A stretch of DNA of 63,227 nucleotides, the filler included, from Salisapilia sapeloensis CBS 127946 (taxonomy: Eukaryota > Protista > Oomycota), in the NCBI GenBank assembly GCA_023334545.1. It is 9 parts of 9 records of this genome, joined end to end, with 100 filler letters (N's around TTAATTAATTAA, not from the genome) between each part and the next. Parts side by side here need not be neighbours in the genome. Positions count along the whole stretch, not along the records: positions 17,351 to 30,288 come from JAADVB010000401.1; 8 more parts are not named here. The stretch is one strand, 5' to 3'. The notes under the pieces were generated by a model. The model made no database searches and was not told the origin of the DNA. It worked only from the letters and a program-made list of their open reading frames with translations. Below, in pieces: positions 17,835 through 30,288 of this stretch; the stretch's first letter is position 1, and each line of letters opens with the position of its first letter. The position numbers were made by a program, and so were the translations under genes.

Positions 17835-19890
17835 ATGGGTGCCGGAGCTTCAACAGAGAAAAGTACCTTGTCCAAGATGCAAGGACGATCGCGGCTCGTG
17901 ACCAACTTGCTTAACTTTAGCAATAAAACAAACCCCGCTCCTCTTGTCGCTGCAAACACACAGTGGAAAATCACTACGCAATACGCTGGGACTGGAGATG
18001 GGAGCGAAATTGCGACAGTAGAACAAGAGTTGTTAGCGGTGTTGATGGACCCAGTCGGTCAAAAGCATATTGGTGCTTTTGCAAAGAAGATCATGACGTC
18101 CGAAACTTTCTTTTGCTGGGTCGAGATCAAGGAATTTGAGGAAGCTCCATCGTCCAGCTATCGGCGGTCCTTGGCGAAGCTCATCTACAAGAAGTACATC
18201 AAGGCTGGTTCTCCAATGGCTCTCGGAAGTATTAATTCCGATCTAATTGCCCATTATGATGTATGTGCTGTACTTTAGTGACGATACCTGGAATGCCTAT
18301 CATCTTATTATCCATGCGAATAGCGTAAAATCCAGGAGACGAGCCCTTCGTCAGTCCATGTGCCAACAGACTTCTTTGACGAGCTCTTGTCGAATATCAT
18401 GACAGACATGTGCCAGAACACATATATGCGCTTTAAATCATCTACAGATTACGCCGTGTATAAAAAGGAGCTCAAGGATACGTACAATAAGGTTACTGCC
18501 GACGACTTTGAGTACCTGGAACTCCTTGGTAGTGGCGGCTTCGGCCGTGTGGCCCACGTCCGAAAGAGATCCACCGGCAAGCACTACGGTAATCTGTGTA
18601 CACTTTCTTGCAGTGATTTTAATCTAGCTCACGTTTGATGTGAATAGCCATGAAGATCCAGCTCAAGTCTGGGTTACTGGAAGAGCACCATGACCAGCTC
18701 AGCCAGATCACATCTGAAAAGGATATACTCCAGATCTGTCATAACCCATTCATTCTGGATATGCATTATAGCTTCCAGACGCCAGCACATGCCATTATTG
18801 TCACAGAGCTCGTTCGAGGAGGTGATCTGAATGAAGCGCTTCGGTCATCGCGTGACGGATGTCTATGCGAAGATAGTGTGAGGTTGTACGCCGCTGAGAT
18901 CGGTCTCGCGCTGAATCACATGCACGAGCTCGGCCTTATTTATCGAGATCTGAAGCCTTGTAATGTTTTGCTTGGGGAAGATGGTCATATCATTTTGGCA
19001 GATATGGGTTTAGCAGCTGGATACGACCCTACATGCCTAAAGCGGGATGAGCATGGCATTCAGCACTATATTCCAAAGGAAACCAAGTCGGGTCGGCGCA
19101 AGACGACTGTCGGCACAAGAGGGTATATGGCACCAGAAATTATCGCCGGCAAGTTGGTGAAGCGAGACCAGCGGCCTGGATATACATTTGCGGTGGACTT
19201 TTGGTCACTTGGAGTCACTATCTTTGAGCTGTTGGTTGGATTTCAGCCATTTTTGCCACACTCCCTTGGCAACTTTTTCCAGGAAGTGGCAAATGAAGAG
19301 ATTTTCCGTCTATCGCCTCGTACGCAGCACAAGATCGAATTGCAAAAAATGACACAAGGAGTGACGTTTCCGTCCCACGTATCCAAGATAGCACAGGACT
19401 TTATACAGCGATTGCTGGAAGTGAATCCGGAGAAACGACTTGGTTGCAACAGTGAAAACGGATTCCAGGAGTTCATGGAGCACCCGTTTCTCGCAGCAAT
19501 TGACTGGGAGAAACTGATGATGAAGCACCTCGATCCTAAATCTAAACCGAATCTGCCTTTACTCACAGACAAGAAGATTTACAACTCGTATGAGCACATG
19601 ATGTCCCACTTTGACATTCGTGACAAAGACTTCGTCCGATGTACGTATCTTGCTATGATATACTGAAGAATTCATGTGGATTGAATGGCGTGATAGATGA
19701 CTGGTATGCGGTTCCTGCGCCCGAGCTCGAAAAACACTTTGATACTTGGGACTACATCTCTCAGCATACCCTTCGAGCCGAATTGGGCATAGCGAAAGAG
19801 TTGGACGAGACAAACATCCCATACAAAGTGCTGCAATTGACAGGAGAAGAAGCACGACGCAAGTCGAAGAGCGCGAGCAAGCTCACGTAG
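17835..19890 (+). CDS. G-protein-coupled receptor kinase-like protein (RGS domain + AGC kinase), 4 exons
   Basis: Exons 17835-18260, 18324-18588, 18648-19640 and 19697-19890, with GT-AG introns in consistent phase (first acceptor could also be 18335). RGS-like helices precede GSGGFG, AMK, YRDLKP, ADMGLA (DLG-type rather than DFG, as in GRKs), VGTRGYMAPE and RLGC. Confidence 0.85.
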
Positions 19891-20383
19891 AAAGCAGCAT
19901 AAATGCAAGATGTATAGATTTCAAATAAAGTTTCTTTATTAAGCAGACCCTCAGAGTGGAATTAGGTTATCTATGGAAGATTTCTCCTCATCTTTGTCAG
20001 TGTGGTGGTACAAGTTATCATCATTGGGCATGGTATTAGTGAAGGAGCTAGCTACAGACAAGTGCGAGGGCGTTCCTGTCAGGAAAAAATTAGAGTTAAT
20101 TTCGAGCGTCATCGAGTGAGCGCTTGCGACGCCACGCTCTGCTACGAAGCTGTAAGATTTTCATCCTCAGAACGCCAGTCAACGCTCTCGCTACTACGTC
20201 TCCAAGTCGAAAATGATCGATAGCTCGAGCTTTTCTTATTCTTATCACGATTTGTGTCCAACCATTTTGTATGGGAAATTGTATGAGGCAGTGGTGATCT
20301 TCTACCGTCGCTATCTTTGGCAGCCCTGATAAGGCCTTCAAGCGCTCTTACGCTCGCTGAAGACTATCGGGAGGTAAAATGTA

Positions 20384-21420
20384 ATGGGGATCTTCTATGC
20401 ATTACCATCAGCCCAGCGGGACGCTTTTCAACGAGCATACAGCTCCAACCCGGAGCTCGTGAAGCGACTAAATTCTGTTGGCATCGGAAGGTCGAACTTG
20501 TATGCCATCCACCGCGTTTTCGTCGCGATGGATACTGACAGTTCCGGAGAAATCAGCCTTGTGGAATTTTTTGATTACGTCGGTGAGTATTCTAGCTGAG
20601 GATGCATGCAGGTATAGAAAAGTTGACTTTTTGCTCTGAATTAGATATTAAAATGAATCGATTTACGAAGAAAGCTTTCAGCGTCATGGATACCGATGGG
20701 AGTGGCGAGATAGACTTTATCGAGTTCGTATTGGCATTATGGAACTATTGCTCATTCACCCATCCAGCACTCGTTCGCTTCGCTTTTGACTTGTACGACC
20801 TTGATGGGAGTGGCAGTATCGATCGCAGTGAAGCTGGTTGCTGCATTCGGGAAATCTGGGGCAGCTCTTGGGAGACGAGTTCATCGGCGAAAAAAGTACA
20901 TTCAAAGCTGGAGATGCTCATTGACAATTCCACTAGCGGGACGATTTCAGCGCCAGCTTTCCAAGAGTTTGTCGTCCGGCATCCGATACTCCTTTTCCCA
21001 GCTTTCCAACTACAGTATGAGCTACAACAGCGAATTCTCGGTCATCGATATTGGCGAAGAGTAGCCAAGAAGCGAGGCAAATGGAGTCCACAGCAGCTAT
21101 TAAAGGGTCAAGTCGCCAAAATCCTGTCGCCGTCGGCACCAGATGAGCCGCCCATGCCACAGTTTTCCAGACAAGCGAGCGAACTTTTTTTGACCGCTTG
21201 CGAGGATGAGCTACATTTCCAGCCAAAGACTTCAACCGGTAAGAAGAGAGGGTCAAGAACAGGATCGAACGAGCGTGTTGTCATGGATATAAACGAAGAG
21301 ACTCCGACATTAGTTGTTCCATTGACAAGGACGCCATCGACCGGAGTCAAGAAGCATACGAAGGCGCAACGAGCGAGCACGAGGACTCTAGCACACGATC
21401 TCGAAATAGAGGACATGTAA
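20384..21420 (+). CDS. EF-hand calcium-binding protein (calcineurin B/NCS-like), 2 exons
   Basis: Exons 20384-20582 and 20645-21420. EF loops are DTDSSGEISLVE, DTDGSGEIDFIE and DLDGSGSIDRSE, plus a degenerate fourth, followed by a low-complexity basic tail. Confidence 0.8.
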
Positions 21421-21484: not shown

Positions 21485-24458
21485 TTATGCTTTTTCGTGT
21501 TTCTTGGCGTCGGCCGAGCGCCGCCTCTTGGCAAAACCTTTCGCAGCCACGGCCTGCAACGCTGCGCGGTGTCTTCCACCACTCCTCCACCACTTTCGCA
21601 CTTCGTCACAGACGAGGACGCTGGAGGCAATGGTGCAAATGTACGCGAGATCTCCTAGTGACAGCGCTTCGGTGTGGAAAACGGACTGGAGCGGTGGGAA
21701 ATAGATGACGAGCAATTGTCCGAGAATGGAGGCTCCGACGGCAAAGGCGAAGAACGTGTTGGACAGCAAACCGATCGAGAAGACGGATTTGTCAGACGAT
21801 CGGCACGAGAGCGCATTGAACATATCGAACATGACGAACGTCGTAAAGCTCATGGTGCGGTCGCGACTGCTAACTGTACCGTCGTCCGCCAGCTCCTTGT
21901 AAAAGACAAAGAGCGTGCCACACACGATGAAGCACGCCGAGGTCAGCACTCGTCGCAGCATGACGCGCGTGATGATATTCGTGTCTTTCGCGCGTGGCCC
22001 TTCCTTCATCACGTCGTGGTCGACAGGTTCGACGCCGAGACTTTGTGCCGGAGGACCATCCATGATGATATTGATCCACAGGATTTGCATCGCGTTGAGT
22101 GGAGACGGCAGATTAAACAGTGTCGAGAAGGCGATGAGTGAAAGTGCCGAGATGCTCGTACTGAGTTGGAAGCGCAGAAAGTGCTTTAGGTTGTGGTAGA
22201 TGGACTTGCCTTCTTCCATGGCGCACACGATCGTGGCAAAGTTGTCGTCTAGTAGAATCATATCCGACGCCTCCTTCGACACGTCCGTGCCACTCGTACC
22301 CATCGCGATACCAATGTCAGCGGCTTTCAACGACGGCGCATCGTTCACGCCATCTCCAGTCATGGCGACTTGCAGGCCAGCCTCTTGGAACGCACGCACG
22401 ATCTTCAGCTTGTCTCTCGGCCGCGTCCGATAGAAGACATGGGTGTTCAAGATGCGTTTCTCCAGTTCTTCCATACCCATCGTCTCCAGCTGAGTGCCGG
22501 ACACGGCGAGGTCTTCCGCCTCACTCCATTGGCTCTCGTCGATGATACCGACTTTACCGGCAATCGCCAGCGCCGTCTCTTTCGAGTCGCCCGTAAGCAT
22601 GACAGTCTTCACGTTACATGCGGCGAGCTCCTGTACCGACTTAGCGACCTCGGGGCGTGGAGGATCTGCCAGGCCAACGAGACCACTGAATGCCATACCG
22701 CCTTCAATCTCGTCACCGAACGCCAGCGCCAACACGCGTAGACCTCTCGTGGCCATCCGCAGTGACTCGTCTGTGACCCGCCGCTTGTCGTCTGCTGTGA
22801 GTGCGCGCAATTGACCAGTGTTGTCTTCCAGCAAATCGCACCGAGCAAGAATGGCTTCTGTCATGCCCTTCGCGTACCATGTCCGCGCGCCGTCCTTATC
22901 GCAGCAGACTGCCATCCACTTCTTCTCCGAGGAGAAAGGAATCTCGTCTACGCGTTGGAAGCCCGTCAAATGACCGGCCGTGATGCCGCTCTTATGTGCG
23001 CAGAGCAAGACGGCGCCTTCGGTGGCTTGGCCGAGCACCTCGCCGTTGACGATAGAGGCGTTATTGCAGAGGGCGCCTGTCAGCAGGCAGTGGTAGACGT
23101 GCGGGTGGGAGCTTTCGGTGACACCTTGCTGATCAATCGTCACGTGTGGCGTCTTTTTATCGGCATACACGTCCTCAGACGTTGTCTTCCGCTGTCCGAT
23201 GTTGTTCACTTGCGCGTATTTTGCCTGGAACGGAACAAAAACTTCCGTCACCTCCATTTGGTTGGTGGTCACGGTCCCTGTTTTATCGACGCACACGACA
23301 TTGATGCATCCGAGAGCTTCGACTGCCGGCAGCTTCTTCACGACAGCGTGGCGTTTAGCCATCTTCATCACGCCAAAGGCCAGCGTCACTGTGACGCAAA
23401 TAGGGAGACCTTCCGGGATGGCAGCGACAGCGAGCGACACGCCGATCTGTACCATGGACAGCAACCCTTTGCCCTGGATGACGCCGATGAGCACGATGAC
23501 GACGATAATGCCGATCGAAAAGACAGACAAGTGCTTGCCGAGCGTGTCCATGTTGGCCTGCAGTGGCGTCTTGCGCTCCTCAACTCGGTGCATCGTGTCG
23601 AAGACGAGACCAAATTCCGTGCGCGAGCCTGTACCATACACAACAGCTCGGCCCCTCCCAGAGCGGACCAGCGTGCCCATGTACACAATGTTCTTACGCT
23701 CCGCCACTGGATGCTTGTGTGCGTCGACGATCGGTAGTGTGTGTTTGGCCACTGGATGCGTTTCTCCAGTCAGGTTGGACTCATCCACTTCCAGTTCAGC
23801 GGCTTCGATGAGTCGCGCATCGGCCGGGATACGGTCTCCGACGCTGATGACGATGACATCGCCAGGCACGAGATCTCGAGCGTAGATGTCTTGTACTTCT
23901 CCATCGCGGAGACAGTGGCAACGAGGCGGCACGAGCTCCTTGAGTGCCTCGAGTGTCTTTTCTGAGCGGTATTCCTGCACGAATGCGACGGTGACGACGA
24001 TCGAGATGGCGACACCGATGGAAACGGCGTCGTCTGTATGACCCATGAGCACACTCACAGCGCCGGACCCGAGTAAGAGTAGAATCAGTGGGTCTTTGAA
24101 CTGTCCGAGGAACTTGCTGAGCATCGATTCCTGTGGTACAGCAGTTAGCGCGATCATTAGACCGTAGACAAGTGTCGAATAAAGCTACCTCGTCTTCTGA
24201 CGTGAGTTCATTATGCCCATGCTCTTGCAGTCGGTGCTCCACGCTATCTGAGCTCAGTCCTTTTGACGGATCTACTTCCAGATCTAGAGCAAGCTCATCA
24301 AGTGCACGGGAGGAGGCACGCAGGCGGAAGGTGGAAGGTTCCGAGTCGCTCAAGGACGCCGTGTCCGCACCTCCCGAGGACGAGAGAAGATGGGCACCAT
24401 CTTCCTCTGTCGGTTCGCCGGCATTGATGTCGATTTCAACGTTATTCGGGGACTCCAT
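21485..24458 (-). CDS. PMR1: Secretory-pathway Ca2+/Mn2+ P-type ATPase (SPCA/PMR1), 2 exons
   Basis: Exons 24458-24189 and 24130-21485. Motifs: DESNLTGE, VAAIPEGLP, DKTGT, MLTGD, TGDGVND, QILWINIIMDGPPAQSLGVE. Confidence 0.92.
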
Positions 24459-24639
24459 GCTACGTAGGAGGATCCACTGTCGTCCGTAAGGTACACTGCG
24501 ATCGGTCGATGAGCTCCTTGCTCGTAGGCTAGATGGCGCGAAGATGATTTTGCACCAATGACAACGCATAAATCAAAATAACAACCAATGACACGGAATG
24601 AGATCAGGAAAGGCTGCAGCGTTCTTATTCCCGTGACGA

Positions 24640-25320
24640 CTACTGCGTGAACCCGAGACTGCGCATGGTCTCCCAGTCGCTAGCAGACGCGAGCTTCTGC
24701 GCAAAGGCAGTCAGCTGGCGTTCGTCCTCGGCGGAAAAGCCGTGGGTGCGAGGGCAGTCAAGATCGAGCACGGCGAGTACCTGGCCTTGGTCGTCCAGAA
24801 TGGGCACGACGATCTCAGATTGAGAAGCATCGTCACAGGCGATGTGGCCTGGGAAGTCGTGGACGTCCGGGATGCGTTGCGTCTCCTTCGTTCGGGCAGC
24901 AGCTCCGCACACACCGTTCATGAGGCGAATGCGCGTGCAAGCAGGTTTGCCCATAAACGGACCGAGGATGAGGATCTCCGAGAATTTGTCCGACTCCTTC
25001 GGGTTCACGAGCGGACGTAAGAAGTAGACTCCTGCCCAGTTGAGAGGACGGTTGGCAGCTTGAAACGCGTTCCAGACAATCGAGGACGCATTCGCGGCGT
25101 TTGCCACGACATCGCGCTGGCCGGTCGTGTACGCGTTGAGATCCATCATGGCGTCCGAGTAGTCCACCGGATGCAGGAAGTTGAGCACGTCCTTCGCCGA
25201 TGGGCAGTCTATGTCATTGTAACGTGAATAAAGGTTGAGATATGCATGTAAAGGAAGCGGACCTGGGGTCCACCCGATGACTGCGGCAAGTTGCTCAATC
25301 TTCGATTCAAGACTGTCCAT
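24640..25320 (-). CDS. GAF-domain free methionine-R-sulfoxide reductase (fRMsr/MsrC-like); possible extra 5' exon at 25592-25452
   Basis: NWAGVYF, LGPFMGKPACTRI, GVCGAAA, DVHDFPGHIACD..SQSEIVVP and LDLD are the fRMsr signature segments. Confidence 0.88.
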   Translation of the reverse strand: MDSLESKIEQLAAVIGWTPGPLPLHAYLNLYSRYNDIDCPSAKDVLNFLHPVDYSDAMMDLNAYTTGQRDVVANAANASSIVWNAFQAANRPLNWAGVYFLRPLVNPKESDKFSEILILGPFMGKPACTRIRLMNGVCGAAARTKETQRIPDVHDFPGHIACDDASQSEIVVPILDDQGQVLAVLDLDCPRTHGFSAEDERQLTAFAQKLASASDWETMRSLGFTQ

Positions 25321-26409: not shown

Positions 26410-27423
26410 ATGGGAGCGACTTCGAGTCACATAGCGGAGCCCACGCCGGCGCGCAGCAACAGGCGCCAGGCATTCAATGTGCTTGCAACGAGTGCCGCAG
26501 ACCCTGTGAAGCCTCAGGTGAAAGAAGAGGAAGAGGAACTACCAGTGTTTGTGCAGCAAATGCAGGAAATCGAACGTGAGCGATCGATGCTTCCGAATCC
26601 AGGTTTATATGAAAGTGCGCCGAACGAGCTTAAGCCGCCCGTGTCGCCGGATGCCTTCGACGGCTTCCGATTCGACTTTACGCGTATCATGGGCCAAAAG
26701 TTTTCCACCTCGCACTCGTTTTTGCTCGGCAGCCCGATGATCCCGGGCGGTATCTACCAGTTCGGCGCCAACGTCGTATGTGGCGATGCAGCAGACCCGT
26801 CCACTTTTTTGATGAGCAAGTTGACGCCGGACGGGTTCTTGGACGCCCGTTGGAACCAGAACCTAAGTGACCGATGGAAGATGCGACACAAGGCGCAGCT
26901 CAAGCCGGAAGAGCACGGCAGCCAGGTCGTGTCGGACTTTGACTACAACGGAGACGACTTCACGTGGAACATGAAGCTGTCGAACGGACCGCTGGTGGGC
27001 GTCTCGTACTTGCAGAGCATCACGCCACACTTGGCCATGGGAGGCGAAGCGTACTACCACGGCAAGCACCGACGTGTCATCTCGGCCTACTGCGCTAAGT
27101 ACTCGACGGACGACTGGGTTGGCATGGCGACTGTCGGCACGGTCGGCACGTTGCAGCTACAGTACTTGCGCAAGCTAGGCACGCGCATTCGTTATGGGTC
27201 AGAGCTGGTGTACAACCATGCTTCTGGCGAAAGTCAGGCAACGGTAGGAGCGGAGTTGGACTTGGGCGGCACGCACATCGTGTCGAGTCTGGACCAGACA
27301 GGTCGCGTGGCATCCAGCGTCGATGCGCGCGTGCTGCCGAACTTTACCTTGTCGTTGTCGGCCGAGGCGTACCCGCTGAAAGATGAGTTCAAATTCGGCT
27401 ACGGCGCCCAGATCCAGTTCTGA
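26410..27423 (+). CDS. TOM40: Mitochondrial import channel Tom40
   Basis: 337 aa with LPNPGLYE, FDGFRFDF, FSTSHSF and YQFGANV, an amphipathic beta-strand pattern, and a C-terminal KFGYGAQIQF beta-signal. Confidence 0.92.
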   Translation: MGATSSHIAEPTPARSNRRQAFNVLATSAADPVKPQVKEEEEELPVFVQQMQEIERERSMLPNPGLYESAPNELKPPVSPDAFDGFRFDFTRIMGQKFSTSHSFLLGSPMIPGGIYQFGANVVCGDAADPSTFLMSKLTPDGFLDARWNQNLSDRWKMRHKAQLKPEEHGSQVVSDFDYNGDDFTWNMKLSNGPLVGVSYLQSITPHLAMGGEAYYHGKHRRVISAYCAKYSTDDWVGMATVGTVGTLQLQYLRKLGTRIRYGSELVYNHASGESQATVGAELDLGGTHIVSSLDQTGRVASSVDARVLPNFTLSLSAEAYPLKDEFKFGYGAQIQF

Positions 27424-27495
27424 GCGTCCTTTATAGAGGAACGGTCGGGAAAGATAACAAGGAAAAAGTTTGCTTTTAGCACGTCGTAGTTTTGT

Positions 27496-28406
27496 TTAAA
27501 AGGGCCAGTCCGCAGCAGGCTTGGACGAGGCGGGGCGACGGGACGGCTGACTCGTCGAGTCGTCAGCAGTTCTGTTGCTGGCGTCAGTACAAGAGTGTAG
27601 ATGGAAAAGGTAGAAGCGTACGGTTCGACGTCCAGGACGGAGTGGAAGCCGTAGAGGCGTGGTAGAGCGTAGACGAAGAGCTCTCGTAGCGCTCGGCTTT
27701 CACCCAAGTCGATGATGGAGGCGGCAGACGTGCCGTCTTCCGTCAGGCGGAAGAGCACACAAGGCTGACCGTCGGCTCCTTGCGTCTGCTCTATCTCGAG
27801 CTGCTTGGCGCGACCCGTCTCGGTCGCAGCGTTCATGTTGGGCGAGTGGTTGAGCGTCAACGACGGCACGCGACGATCTAGCAGTTCTAGCACGAGTCCA
27901 ACCTCGGATGGGCTGAGACTGAAGAACTAGAGTCCAAATTAGACTATCTTTTGACTTTATGGTGCAAGCTGCCAAGTGCATACCATTTTCTTGTTGTAGT
28001 CATACCCACTGTTCGTCGCTTTCGCCCACGACAGCATCATGCCGCCCTATAATGCATAGTGAGTACAGAGTTGCGACAGTGTCATTTGTGATTCATACGA
28101 GTCGTTTTGTCTTGAGGTAGTTGCCGCTGTTAGCTGTGGCGTATTGGGGCGCATTCGGGAGCACCTACTCGGACATGACGTACAAAGTGAGGATGAGCGA
28201 GTTTACGTGCATCTCGTGACCGTACTTGAAACGCAGAGTCACTGCCGTAGACGCTAAAATTCGGAAAGACACGAGTAGCTATTTGCATATGGATTGTAAG
28301 TCGTCTTACTGACGGGTCAGTGTGGAACGTAGCAAGTACCAAACGCTCGTGCTGCTGACCCAGCAGCCATTGTCGGTCGACGCGCGCCTAGAGTACGCAA
28401 CAACAT
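27496..28406 (-). CDS. Whirly-family ssDNA-binding protein with a mitochondrial-type presequence, 6 exons, 209 aa
   Basis: Exons 28406-28340, 28278-28226, 28164-28099, 28046-27984, 27926-27622 and 27571-27496 (630 nt); all five introns are GT-AG, 50-61 nt and phase-consistent. Product motifs RVFPNFSVY, APQY..NSG, YDYNKKMFFSLSPSEVG, NHSPN and GESRALRELFVYALPRLYGFH are collinear with recalled plant Whirly motifs. Confidence 0.85.
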
Positions 28407-29807
28407 GCTTTGGCTCGCTTCGTGTTTCGATTCGATTTGCCAGGTTGCAAAGCAGCTACCAGATAGCCAATCAGCTAAACAGCCACCCATGCGTTTCCAG
28501 TATTTTGACCTGTGGTCGACATACCACGCCTCGATTGTTGTGGTAATTTCTCTCTGGTCGATTCTGATCAACTGTATTCGAGGAATGGGTCATGGACAGG
28601 AGTATACGATCTTCAATGCAAGATGAGCTTGTATTTGCCAGACATACTGGAGTAGTACTTGTCATCGATTTACTGCACACTGCACAATTTACATGCTTGT
28701 AGTCTTTTTGTGATCTTTTCTTGGGTTATGTTCGGCCGCGATCAGATTCAATTCTGATGGAAGATGGCCCGAAATAATCTTCTTCTCTACCCTCACTTCC
28801 CAATTTAGTATACATCGAGCAGTTCGACCATTCTTGACTTTTTGATCAAATGCAAATAGAGGAGTGTGAAGCTTGCAGGACCATTAGCCTTTGACTTAAC
28901 AGCGCAAACGCCACGCAGCACTGATTGTGGTCTGCTATCTGAGACAGAATGAATGCGGTGCATTCAAATCGGTCGACAATCGTTGCCGTGGCGAGCATGT
29001 GTAGACACGTAGCGCACGATCCGGAGCGGACTTTGCTACTAGGATATGAATATACGATATCTCCTCGAGTGGATAGCGAGCTGCAACAATGTACGTACCA
29101 ATCCTGCCAGTGAAGTAGGTTCTATGCTTTAAGGTCGGAGATTGCTGGTAACTTCCGATTGAGGCTGCTTCGTCTTCCCGGCACGCACTCCACTCAACCC
29201 AATGGCTTCTGGTCCTGTCTGCGGTGGCTTCGTTCTGCACGCATCATGCTGTGAAACGCTTGAACAAAAACACTCTCGGTGTTCCGTGGAGAAGCTATCG
29301 GAAATAAAGAATAGTAGTCTGGAGCGGATGCTCAATGTTGGAAGTAGAATGGGACTCTATGGAGGTAGAGCAGCTGCGGAAGAAAACCTGCCATCCAACA
29401 TCCGATAGCAGAGGTGGCCAGATACCTTTGTTTATGTAGGAGAAATCTGGAGCCAGAAGCGGGTTGTCGCCTCGTCTGCCCAGGCAAGTGAGCAGCAACC
29501 ATTCGTTGTTGGAGAAACCTCACTCCGATCCTCATGCGCCTCCCGACGCTGCCATTGCCAAGTCATGTTCACCCTATAATCATAATCAAGCTCCGGCAGC
29601 ATTTCCATCCTACTTTATATTGTCTCCTTTGGCTCAGCTGAAGTCCTGATATGGTATCTTTATCAACCACCTGTTTTCGCTCATCAAGATGACAGCTCCC
29701 TCTCGCGTGCTCATTTCCAGATCAGCGTGCTACGCGGCAAAGTTTCTCCGGATCTAACTAAGAAAAAGTAGTGTTAAGTGGAGTAGTGTCTTCGTAGTGG
29801 TATAAAC

Positions 29808-30288
29808 ATGGGAAACGGAGAATCGACGCAAGGAGCTGCTGAAAGAGGTCATCGCGAGGGCCAGGATCAGCAGCAGTATGAGAGCTCAGTTGATGTCAGT
29901 GTTAGCCCTCCAGTGGCAACACCGGCAACGGAAATGCAGGAAGGAGAAAAAAAGAGTGAGGCAGTGGCGACTGCAAAGGGATCGGAACCGGAACTGGAAC
30001 CTGGTGCTACCACCACGGTAGCCACGACCTCTTCCACCAGTTCCATGTCGACAGCGCTACCTGCGCAGCAAACCGCTTCAAAGCAGTCAGTCACGAAAAC
30101 AACTTACACGACGACTGTGACTACAACTACCGTCACAACAAACGCGACTGCGACTCGCCATAAGGTGATGCGTTCGTCGTTGGACTCGGAGGTCGTGTAC
30201 AGCGGCTATGCTCCTGTGAGCGTGACGGACAGTGCGAAGGTGAAGCGTTGTGAGCACGGAAGCAAGCGTGATGTGGAGGCAGACTCTA
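29808..30288 (+). CDS. 5' fragment of a low-complexity Thr-rich protein with an N-myristoylation-like start
   Basis: The ATG ORF starting MGNGES is Thr/Ser/Ala-rich and stays open into the spacer. Confidence 0.6.

Follow-up and report, generated by a model that had tools for sequence, protein, structure and literature searches.

A transcribed six-exon Whirly gene in the oomycete Salisapilia sapeloensis, encoding a presumed mitochondrial single-stranded DNA-binding protein

Gene structure and neighbouring genes

The window analysed here, a stretch of 63,227 nucleotides joined from nine parts of the Salisapilia sapeloensis CBS 127946 genome with filler between parts, carried a six-exon Whirly gene on the minus strand, running from 28406 to 27496 (Table 1). 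The joined coding sequence of 630 nt ended in a TAA stop (27498-27496, minus strand) and encoded 209 aa, an exact match to the spliced product proposed in an earlier sequence-only reading of this DNA. All five introns were short (50 to 61 nt) and bounded by GT..AG. As had been remarked in that reading, exon 5 alone was conspicuous in the list of open reading frames (ORFs), within a 164-aa ORF (27399..27893). Exon 1 encoded M1 to F22 and the first base of codon 23, comprising a basic leader devoid of acidic residues that ended in R-A-F↓A-T (the arrow marking the leader end), and exon 5 contained the conserved helix segment GE.R.L.EL..Y.LPRLYGFHSVL.

Table 1. Features of the Whirly locus and neighbouring genes, in window positions (L001 is an assembled orthologous locus)
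Feature	Position	Strand	Length (nt)	Description
Extra upstream intron	28456..28509	-	54	GT..AG; organism A contigs only
Whirly exon 1	28340..28406	-		ATG at 28406
Whirly intron 1	28279..28339	-	61	GT..AG, phase 1; alignment column shared with L001, P. infestans and Aphanomyces
Whirly exon 2	28226..28278	-		Start of Whirly domain (RVFPNFSVYGSDSAFQ); GSDSAF replacing KGKAAL
Whirly intron 2	28165..28225	-	61	GT..AG, phase 0; in L001 and Aphanomyces, not in P. infestans
Whirly exon 3	28099..28164	-	66	Length identical in L001
Whirly intron 3	28047..28098	-	52	GT..AG, phase 0; kept in all four compared loci
Whirly exon 4	27984..28046	-	63	Equal length in L001, P. infestans and Aphanomyces
Whirly intron 4	27927..27983	-	57	GT..AG, phase 0; kept in all four compared loci
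Whirly exon 5	27622..27926	-	305	Second half of Whirly domain
Whirly intron 5	27572..27621	-	50	GT..AG, phase 2; kept in all four compared loci
Whirly exon 6	27496..27571	-		Low-complexity linker and C-terminal D-W-P-F, then TAA
Whirly 3' UTR	27469..27495	-	at least 27	Contigs (records 4 and 7) start at 27470/27469
Tom40/eukaryotic-porin gene	26410..27423	+		Convergent; Porin_3, 132.5 bits
P-type cation ATPase	21485-24569	-		ORFs 23796-24569 (Cation_ATPase_N) and 21485-24157 (E1-E2_ATPase and rest)

That the P-type cation ATPase was split over two overlapping ORFs implies either an intron or a shift of frame near 24157. Further genes at 17835-21420 and 24640-25320, namely an RGS-domain ORF and those for a protein kinase, an EF-hand protein and a GAF-domain protein, displayed no obvious link to the Whirly gene.

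Transcription and splicing

Eight public runs labelled as RNA (a guessed label) contained part of the stretch, and four of them were compared over positions 27300-28700. Transcript contigs from runs X1 and X3 (organism A) were 100% identical to the window, and those from runs X5 and X6 (organism B, a second organism) about 97% identical. Intron-free Whirly contigs were present in all four compared runs. Their joints were located at 27571/27622, 27926/27984, 28045/28098 (cut shifted by +1), 28162/28224 (cut shifted by +2) and 28278/28340, i.e., at the five predicted junctions once the cuts are shifted, the last joint missing from X6 only, where the contig ends. The five junctions put forward from sequence were thereby matched by spliced contigs from four runs and two organisms. 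Eleven differences were listed between organism B and the window in the coding sequence, comprising 8 synonymous changes and 3 conservative replacements. The Whirly locus is a real, transcribed gene.

The plus-strand Tom40-like transcript showed a poly(A) loose end at 27481, and the Whirly contigs of organism B extended to 27469/27470, so that the 3' ends of the convergent Tom40-like and Whirly mRNAs overlapped by about 12-13 nt, which accounts for the organism A contigs that merged both genes. Upstream of the Whirly ATG, organism A contigs ran on for a further 630 nt or more; colinearity with the window held over 28510-28700, the 54-nt intron at 28509-28456 being the only interruption. This intron is either a 5'-UTR intron of the Whirly gene or part of a neighbouring upstream minus-strand transcript, the latter being conceivable since contigs of the same organism merged the downstream gene as well. 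In its spliced form, the stretch upstream of the Whirly ATG contained five ATGs, and the ORFs upstream of the Whirly gene (28474-30287) gave no Pfam match. The sequence-only reading had raised the concern that a first-exon frame open upstream might allow a longer N-terminus; this concern proved unfounded, as the spliced frame of the ATG at 28406 met a stop at 28592-28590 with no ATG between, so that the N-terminus is not extendable within the covered transcript sequence. All orthologues likewise opened with a short leader of comparable kind.

Assignment to the Whirly family

Whirly domain profiles recognized the gene and its orthologues. Exon 5 alone scored 22.5 bits against Pfam PF08536 (E 1.1e-4, profile positions 54-108), just under the cut-off of 23, while five oomycete orthologues (P0002, P0003, P0005, P0006 and P0012) scored 39-58 bits against the same cut-off. 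The spliced window protein scored 87.8 bits (E 6e-26) over residues 15-195 against our own profile of non-oomycete Whirlies, the best of 2000 shuffles reaching 6 bits. This profile was built from 35 proteins, 33 of them with PF08536 on record; two short fragments among the 35 (P0093 and P0095) carried a C-terminal helix of oomycete type and may themselves come from oomycetes. The Pfam scores refer to exon 5 and to orthologues, and the AlphaFold model to an orthologue; identity between these orthologues and the window protein did not exceed about 54%.

The fold was assessed by proxy on an AlphaFold2 model of P0054, the orthologue from P. megakarya, whose identity to the window protein in alignment A3 was 54.5%. 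Its core (pLDDT above 90) displayed the Whirly arrangement of two antiparallel sheets of four strands, with a helix after each sheet, the second of them long; the C-terminal tail was modelled at a pLDDT below 50. In a Foldseek search of this model against the PDB, the top 16 matches were all plant Whirly structures (1L3A, 3N1H, 3R9Y, 3R9Z, 4KOO, 4KOP and 4KOQ; E 3e-11 to 5e-9, TM 0.67-0.78 by target). PUR-alpha and MRP1/2 appeared in the same search at E 3.5e-4 or worse, the MRP1/2 structures 2gia and 2gje at E of about 4e-3 (TM 0.62-0.64 by target). A profile search of PDB sequences with alignment A3 retrieved 1L3A at E 3e-43, a value not independent since A3 includes canonical Whirlies. ESM Atlas neighbours comprised Whirly clusters from Oomycota, Streptophyta and Euglenozoa.

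The profile match and the Whirly fold anticipated by the sequence-only reading were hence both recovered, the latter on the orthologue model with plant Whirlies as best PDB matches. Judged by profile and by orthologue fold, the window protein is a member of the Whirly family. Within the clade, conservation was highest in the C-terminal helix segment, in agreement with a predicted homotetramer ('whirligig') formed through these helices.

Orthologues, phylogeny and conservation of gene structure

A word-index protein search with the exon-5 ORF returned a single 91-aa fragment (P0001, 45% identical), through which two assembled loci were reached, L001 and L002. Full-length annotated orthologues came from an exhaustive profile search with alignment A1, made of the exon 5 sequences from the window and L001. 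Named relatives belonged to several Phytophthora species, Peronospora, Hyaloperonospora, Plasmopara, Bremia, Peronosclerospora and Nothophytophthora, as well as to Globisporangium, Pythium, Lagenidium, Albugo and Aphanomyces. Over the full length, identity between the window protein and any database orthologue was at most about 54%, and exact look-up of five other ORFs of the window in the protein collection gave no match; the gene therefore belongs to an oomycete lineage with no close annotated relative in that collection. Six large low-complexity proteins (P0015, P0016, P0020, P0021, P0025 and P0026) repeatedly matched the variable loop only and were set aside as probably compositional.

In the maximum-likelihood tree, the window protein and L001 fell within an oomycete clade together with all 17 named oomycete rows (support 100/98), in keeping with the oomycete origin assumed for the gene in the sequence-only reading. 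Both were placed on the non-Aphanomyces (peronosporalean) side (support 93/97), which is as fine as the placement goes. Thirteen non-oomycete Whirlies, including one from Ochromonas, formed a separate clade (support 99/95). The tree was built without plant rows, and sisterhood to plant WHY2 or to ochrophyte Whirlies falls outside its scope.

Gene structure was conserved along with sequence. L001 could be modelled with six exons, its five introns agreeing with those of the window gene in position and phase, and its exons 3, 4 and 5 (66, 63 and 305 nt) in length. For P. infestans (L003) and Aphanomyces euteiches (L004), the annotated protein was mapped onto the DNA of its own locus: the former locus carried introns 1, 3, 4 and 5 of the window gene, and the latter all five plus two more. 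Shared introns in L001, L003 and L004 occupied identical alignment columns with identical phases. The convergent Porin_3 neighbour was likewise common to the window, L001, L002 and P. infestans. The gene order WD40-repeat gene, Whirly and convergent Porin_3 gene was found in L001, L002 and the P. infestans locus, and only its Porin_3 side was recognisable in the window.

Several public orthologue models (P0064, P0062, P0067, P0013 and P0009) appeared to be broken by the short exons. The Bremia model apparently retained an intron, which adds 21 aa ahead of the FF of exon 5, the Plasmopara model was devoid of FFSLSPSE, with which exon 5 begins, that of [Pythium] brassicae had no C-terminal helix, and those of P. 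fragariaefolia and Nothophytophthora were chimeric or truncated.

Motifs specific to the oomycete clade

The KGKAAL hallmark of higher plants was absent from the window protein. As had been read from sequence, it was replaced by GSDSAF (G34-S-D-S-A-F39 in alignment A3), so that both lysines of the motif were substituted, by G34 and D36. The position equivalent to K67 of the potato protein StWHY2 was occupied by Asp or Glu in most of the oomycete clade and by Gln in Pythium insidiosum (A3). In StWHY2, K67 links tetramers into 24-mer shells, and is needed both to bind long single-stranded DNA (ssDNA) cooperatively and to protect from ciprofloxacin damage in planta, while being dispensable for the tetramer and for short-ssDNA binding (PMC3245945). 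As a hallmark, KGKAAL characterises higher plants only, being absent in green algae and Marchantia according to a 2022 review (PMC9070903). Since the lysine required for 24-mer shells in plants is missing, this higher-order assembly is probably different or absent in the oomycete Whirly. Binding properties may differ as well in oomycetes, because replacement of KGKAAL in a plant Whirly abolished ssDNA binding (PMC3245945).

A C-terminal [DE]WPF ended 16 of the 17 orthologues, the exception being the broken Bremia model, and read D206-W207-P-F in the window protein. The tip of bacterial SSB ends in IPF. Mimicry of the SSB tip by [DE]WPF was ranked below homology to the plant Glu-Trp tail. In StWHY1, Glu271 and Trp272 contact Lys188 of the domain, and mutation of Trp272 raises ssDNA binding (PMC9070903). 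The oomycete end resembles this autoregulatory Glu271-Trp272 tail, an equivalence by position only, and an autoregulatory or partner-binding tail has likely been retained.

N-terminal leader and proposed function

The sequence-only reading had described an Arg-rich start free of acidic residues, and the N-terminal 22-24 residues of the window protein were indeed basic with no acidic residue, likewise in 16 orthologues. All 17 full-length orthologues carried such a leader (18-31 aa, with 3-4 R/K), rich in Ser, Thr, Ala and Leu, its sole acidic residue being a Glu that directly abuts the Whirly domain. Across orthologues the sequence of the leader drifted while its composition stayed constant, and near its end an aromatic residue preceded a Ser or Ala (R20-A-F↓A-T in the window protein). 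An R-x-F↓A/S end fits the R-3 type motif for cleavage by the mitochondrial processing peptidase. From its composition and this motif, the leader fits a mitochondrial matrix presequence; the UniRef name of the P. megakarya orthologue is 'Mitochondrial protein'. Plant WHY2 protects mitochondrial DNA (mtDNA) and limits microhomology-driven rearrangement. The leader, taken together with this plant biology, leads us to infer that the oomycete protein is mitochondrial and helps to maintain mtDNA.

Altogether, the window encodes a nuclear, intron-rich and transcribed oomycete Whirly, which we consider likely to act as a mitochondrial ssDNA-binding protein that limits microhomology rearrangement. The product would be imported into mitochondria, its basic leader serving as a matrix-targeting presequence to be cleaved off by the mitochondrial processing peptidase. 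Tetramers of the mature protein would assemble via the strongly conserved C-terminal helices and, within the mitochondrial nucleoid, bind ssDNA, and possibly RNA too, on the blades formed by their beta-sheets. Like plant WHY2, they would shield resected ends, limit microhomology annealing and rearrangement, and stabilise mtDNA. Shell formation is probably absent or altered without the KGKAAL lysines, and a probable task of the acidic-Trp tip is to temper binding or attract partners.

Localisation and ligand are the two points on which other functions might be envisaged. A nuclear or dual-localised Whirly, acting on nuclear DNA at replication origins, telomeres or promoters, would have precedents, as TIF1, a distant Whirly homologue of the protist Tetrahymena, acts in the nucleus (PMC2377264), and plant Whirlies occur in nuclei and organelles (PMC9070903), with reported nuclear roles of WHY1; moreover, annotated 158-aa 'variant' products of P. 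nicotianae start after the leader and would be leaderless if real. Such a location is nevertheless unlikely for the oomycete protein, given that the basic acid-free extension of 18-31 aa is present in all 17 full-length orthologues, drifting in sequence but not in composition as matrix presequences do, and that a basic NLS-like cluster was not seen by eye.

A Whirly-fold protein that binds or chaperones RNA in mitochondria, like MRP1/2 or WHY1 in RNA splicing, rather than maintaining DNA, also seems improbable. Plant Whirly structures matched the orthologue model about 7 orders of magnitude better than MRP1/2 did, and Pfam assigned the oomycete orthologues to Whirly and not to MRP, although that model matched MRP1/2 (2gia and 2gje) too, the neighbouring Euglenozoa cluster of the Atlas mixed Pfam Whirly and MRP annotations, and a change of ligand could accompany the loss of the KGKAAL lysines. 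Finally, an artefactual or decaying pseudogene reading of the spliced frame, which might have been suspected from the single exon visible as an ORF and from the exon-5 score 0.5 bit below the Pfam cut-off, is refuted by the spliced transcripts matching five junctions in four runs and two organisms, the mostly synonymous substitutions, the intron positions kept across orders and the full-length score of 87.8 bits.

Starting from the preferred mitochondrial ssDNA-binding role, a wider proposal can be put forward tentatively, with somewhat less than an even chance of being right: oomycete Whirlies may constitute a distinct, anciently separate mitochondrial subfamily that lost the 24-mer lysines, kept the acidic-Trp tip, and would be a main guardian of mtDNA against short-repeat recombination in a plastid-less lineage. 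If true, Whirly-based surveillance of organelle genomes would not be an invention of the green lineage, and ochrophytes would carry a separate, probably plastid-directed copy.

Prior annotation and significance

The sequence-only reading had cautioned that automated annotation might already list such genes, and rightly so. PF08536 was found in the precomputed annotation of nearly all oomycete orthologues, including those of Phytophthora, Plasmopara, Pythium, Albugo and Aphanomyces, and public annotations spanned more than 20 oomycete species. The name 'whirly isoform 1' was attached to the proteins of P. cinnamomi, Plasmopara halstedii and Globisporangium splendens, and 'Plant transcription factor' to the P. 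cactorum orthologue. Novelty is therefore limited, Whirly in oomycetes being already recorded by automated annotation. In the searchable literature, no relevant paper was found on a Whirly of oomycetes or stramenopiles or on PITG_13252. [quoted passage not shown]

A conserved and expressed Whirly with a mitochondrial-type leader across the sampled oomycete orders makes the family wider than plants. Oomycetes would offer a plastid-free system for the mitochondrial role of Whirly, with no redundancy from plastid paralogues, and the natural loss of the KGKAAL lysines provides a ready test of whether function needs the 24-mer assembly. Oomycetes include major crop and fish pathogens, and no Whirly is known from animals; for these reasons the oomycete protein could have practical interest. 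The weight of these points is limited, because the orthologues are already public with the Whirly domain assigned and their function is presumptive.

Comparison with known systems

Among the closest known counterparts were the annotated oomycete orthologues (e.g., PITG_13252 of P. infestans), which shared with the window gene the clade, the motifs, the [DE]WPF end, the intron positions and the Porin_3 neighbour. They differed by an identity to the window protein of at most about 54%, and intron 2 of the window gene was absent from P. infestans.

Ochrophyte-like Whirlies, i.e., that of Ochromonas (MMETSP1177, P0079) and metagenomic sequences, had the Whirly domain (92.6 and 134 bits on PF08536 for P0022 and P0024), and their named member belongs to the same supergroup as oomycetes. 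Unlike the oomycete proteins, they formed a separate clade (99/95), kept YKGKAA or YKSKAA and FFHDPNMG, and started with hydrophobic, signal-peptide-like N-termini instead of a basic leader. Among P0079-P0092, several N-termini continued with Phe after the hydrophobic stretch, resembling the bipartite plastid targeting of ochrophytes; such proteins would be at odds with the survey's report that stramenopile algae lack Whirly (PMC4827209).

Tetrahymena TIF1 and trypanosome MRP1/MRP2 are likewise non-plant proteins that are related to Whirly or share its fold (PMC2377264). TIF1 differs in being nuclear (PMC2377264), and MRP1/2 in binding guide RNA and in a structural match of E about 4e-3, versus about 1e-10 for plant Whirlies. 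Another Whirly outside the green lineage was P0023, from the transcriptome of the euglenid Ploeotia vitrea, with 105 bits on PF08536 and a basic N-terminal leader, in the phylum that holds MRP1/2.

With plant WHY2 (StWHY2 3N1H and AtWHY2 4KOP), the oomycete Whirly shared PF08536, the same fold (TM 0.77-0.78 by target for the orthologue model), a presumed organelle-type leader at the N-terminus, an acidic-Trp pair two residues from the C-terminus that resembles the plant Glu-Trp tail by position, and probably the protection of ssDNA in the mitochondrial nucleoid. It differed from plant WHY2 by an identity of 22-25% in structural alignments with the orthologue model, by GSDSAF in place of KGKAAL (K67 to Asp) and HSPN in place of HDPN, and by a host devoid of plastids, in which it is apparently the single gene of its clade.
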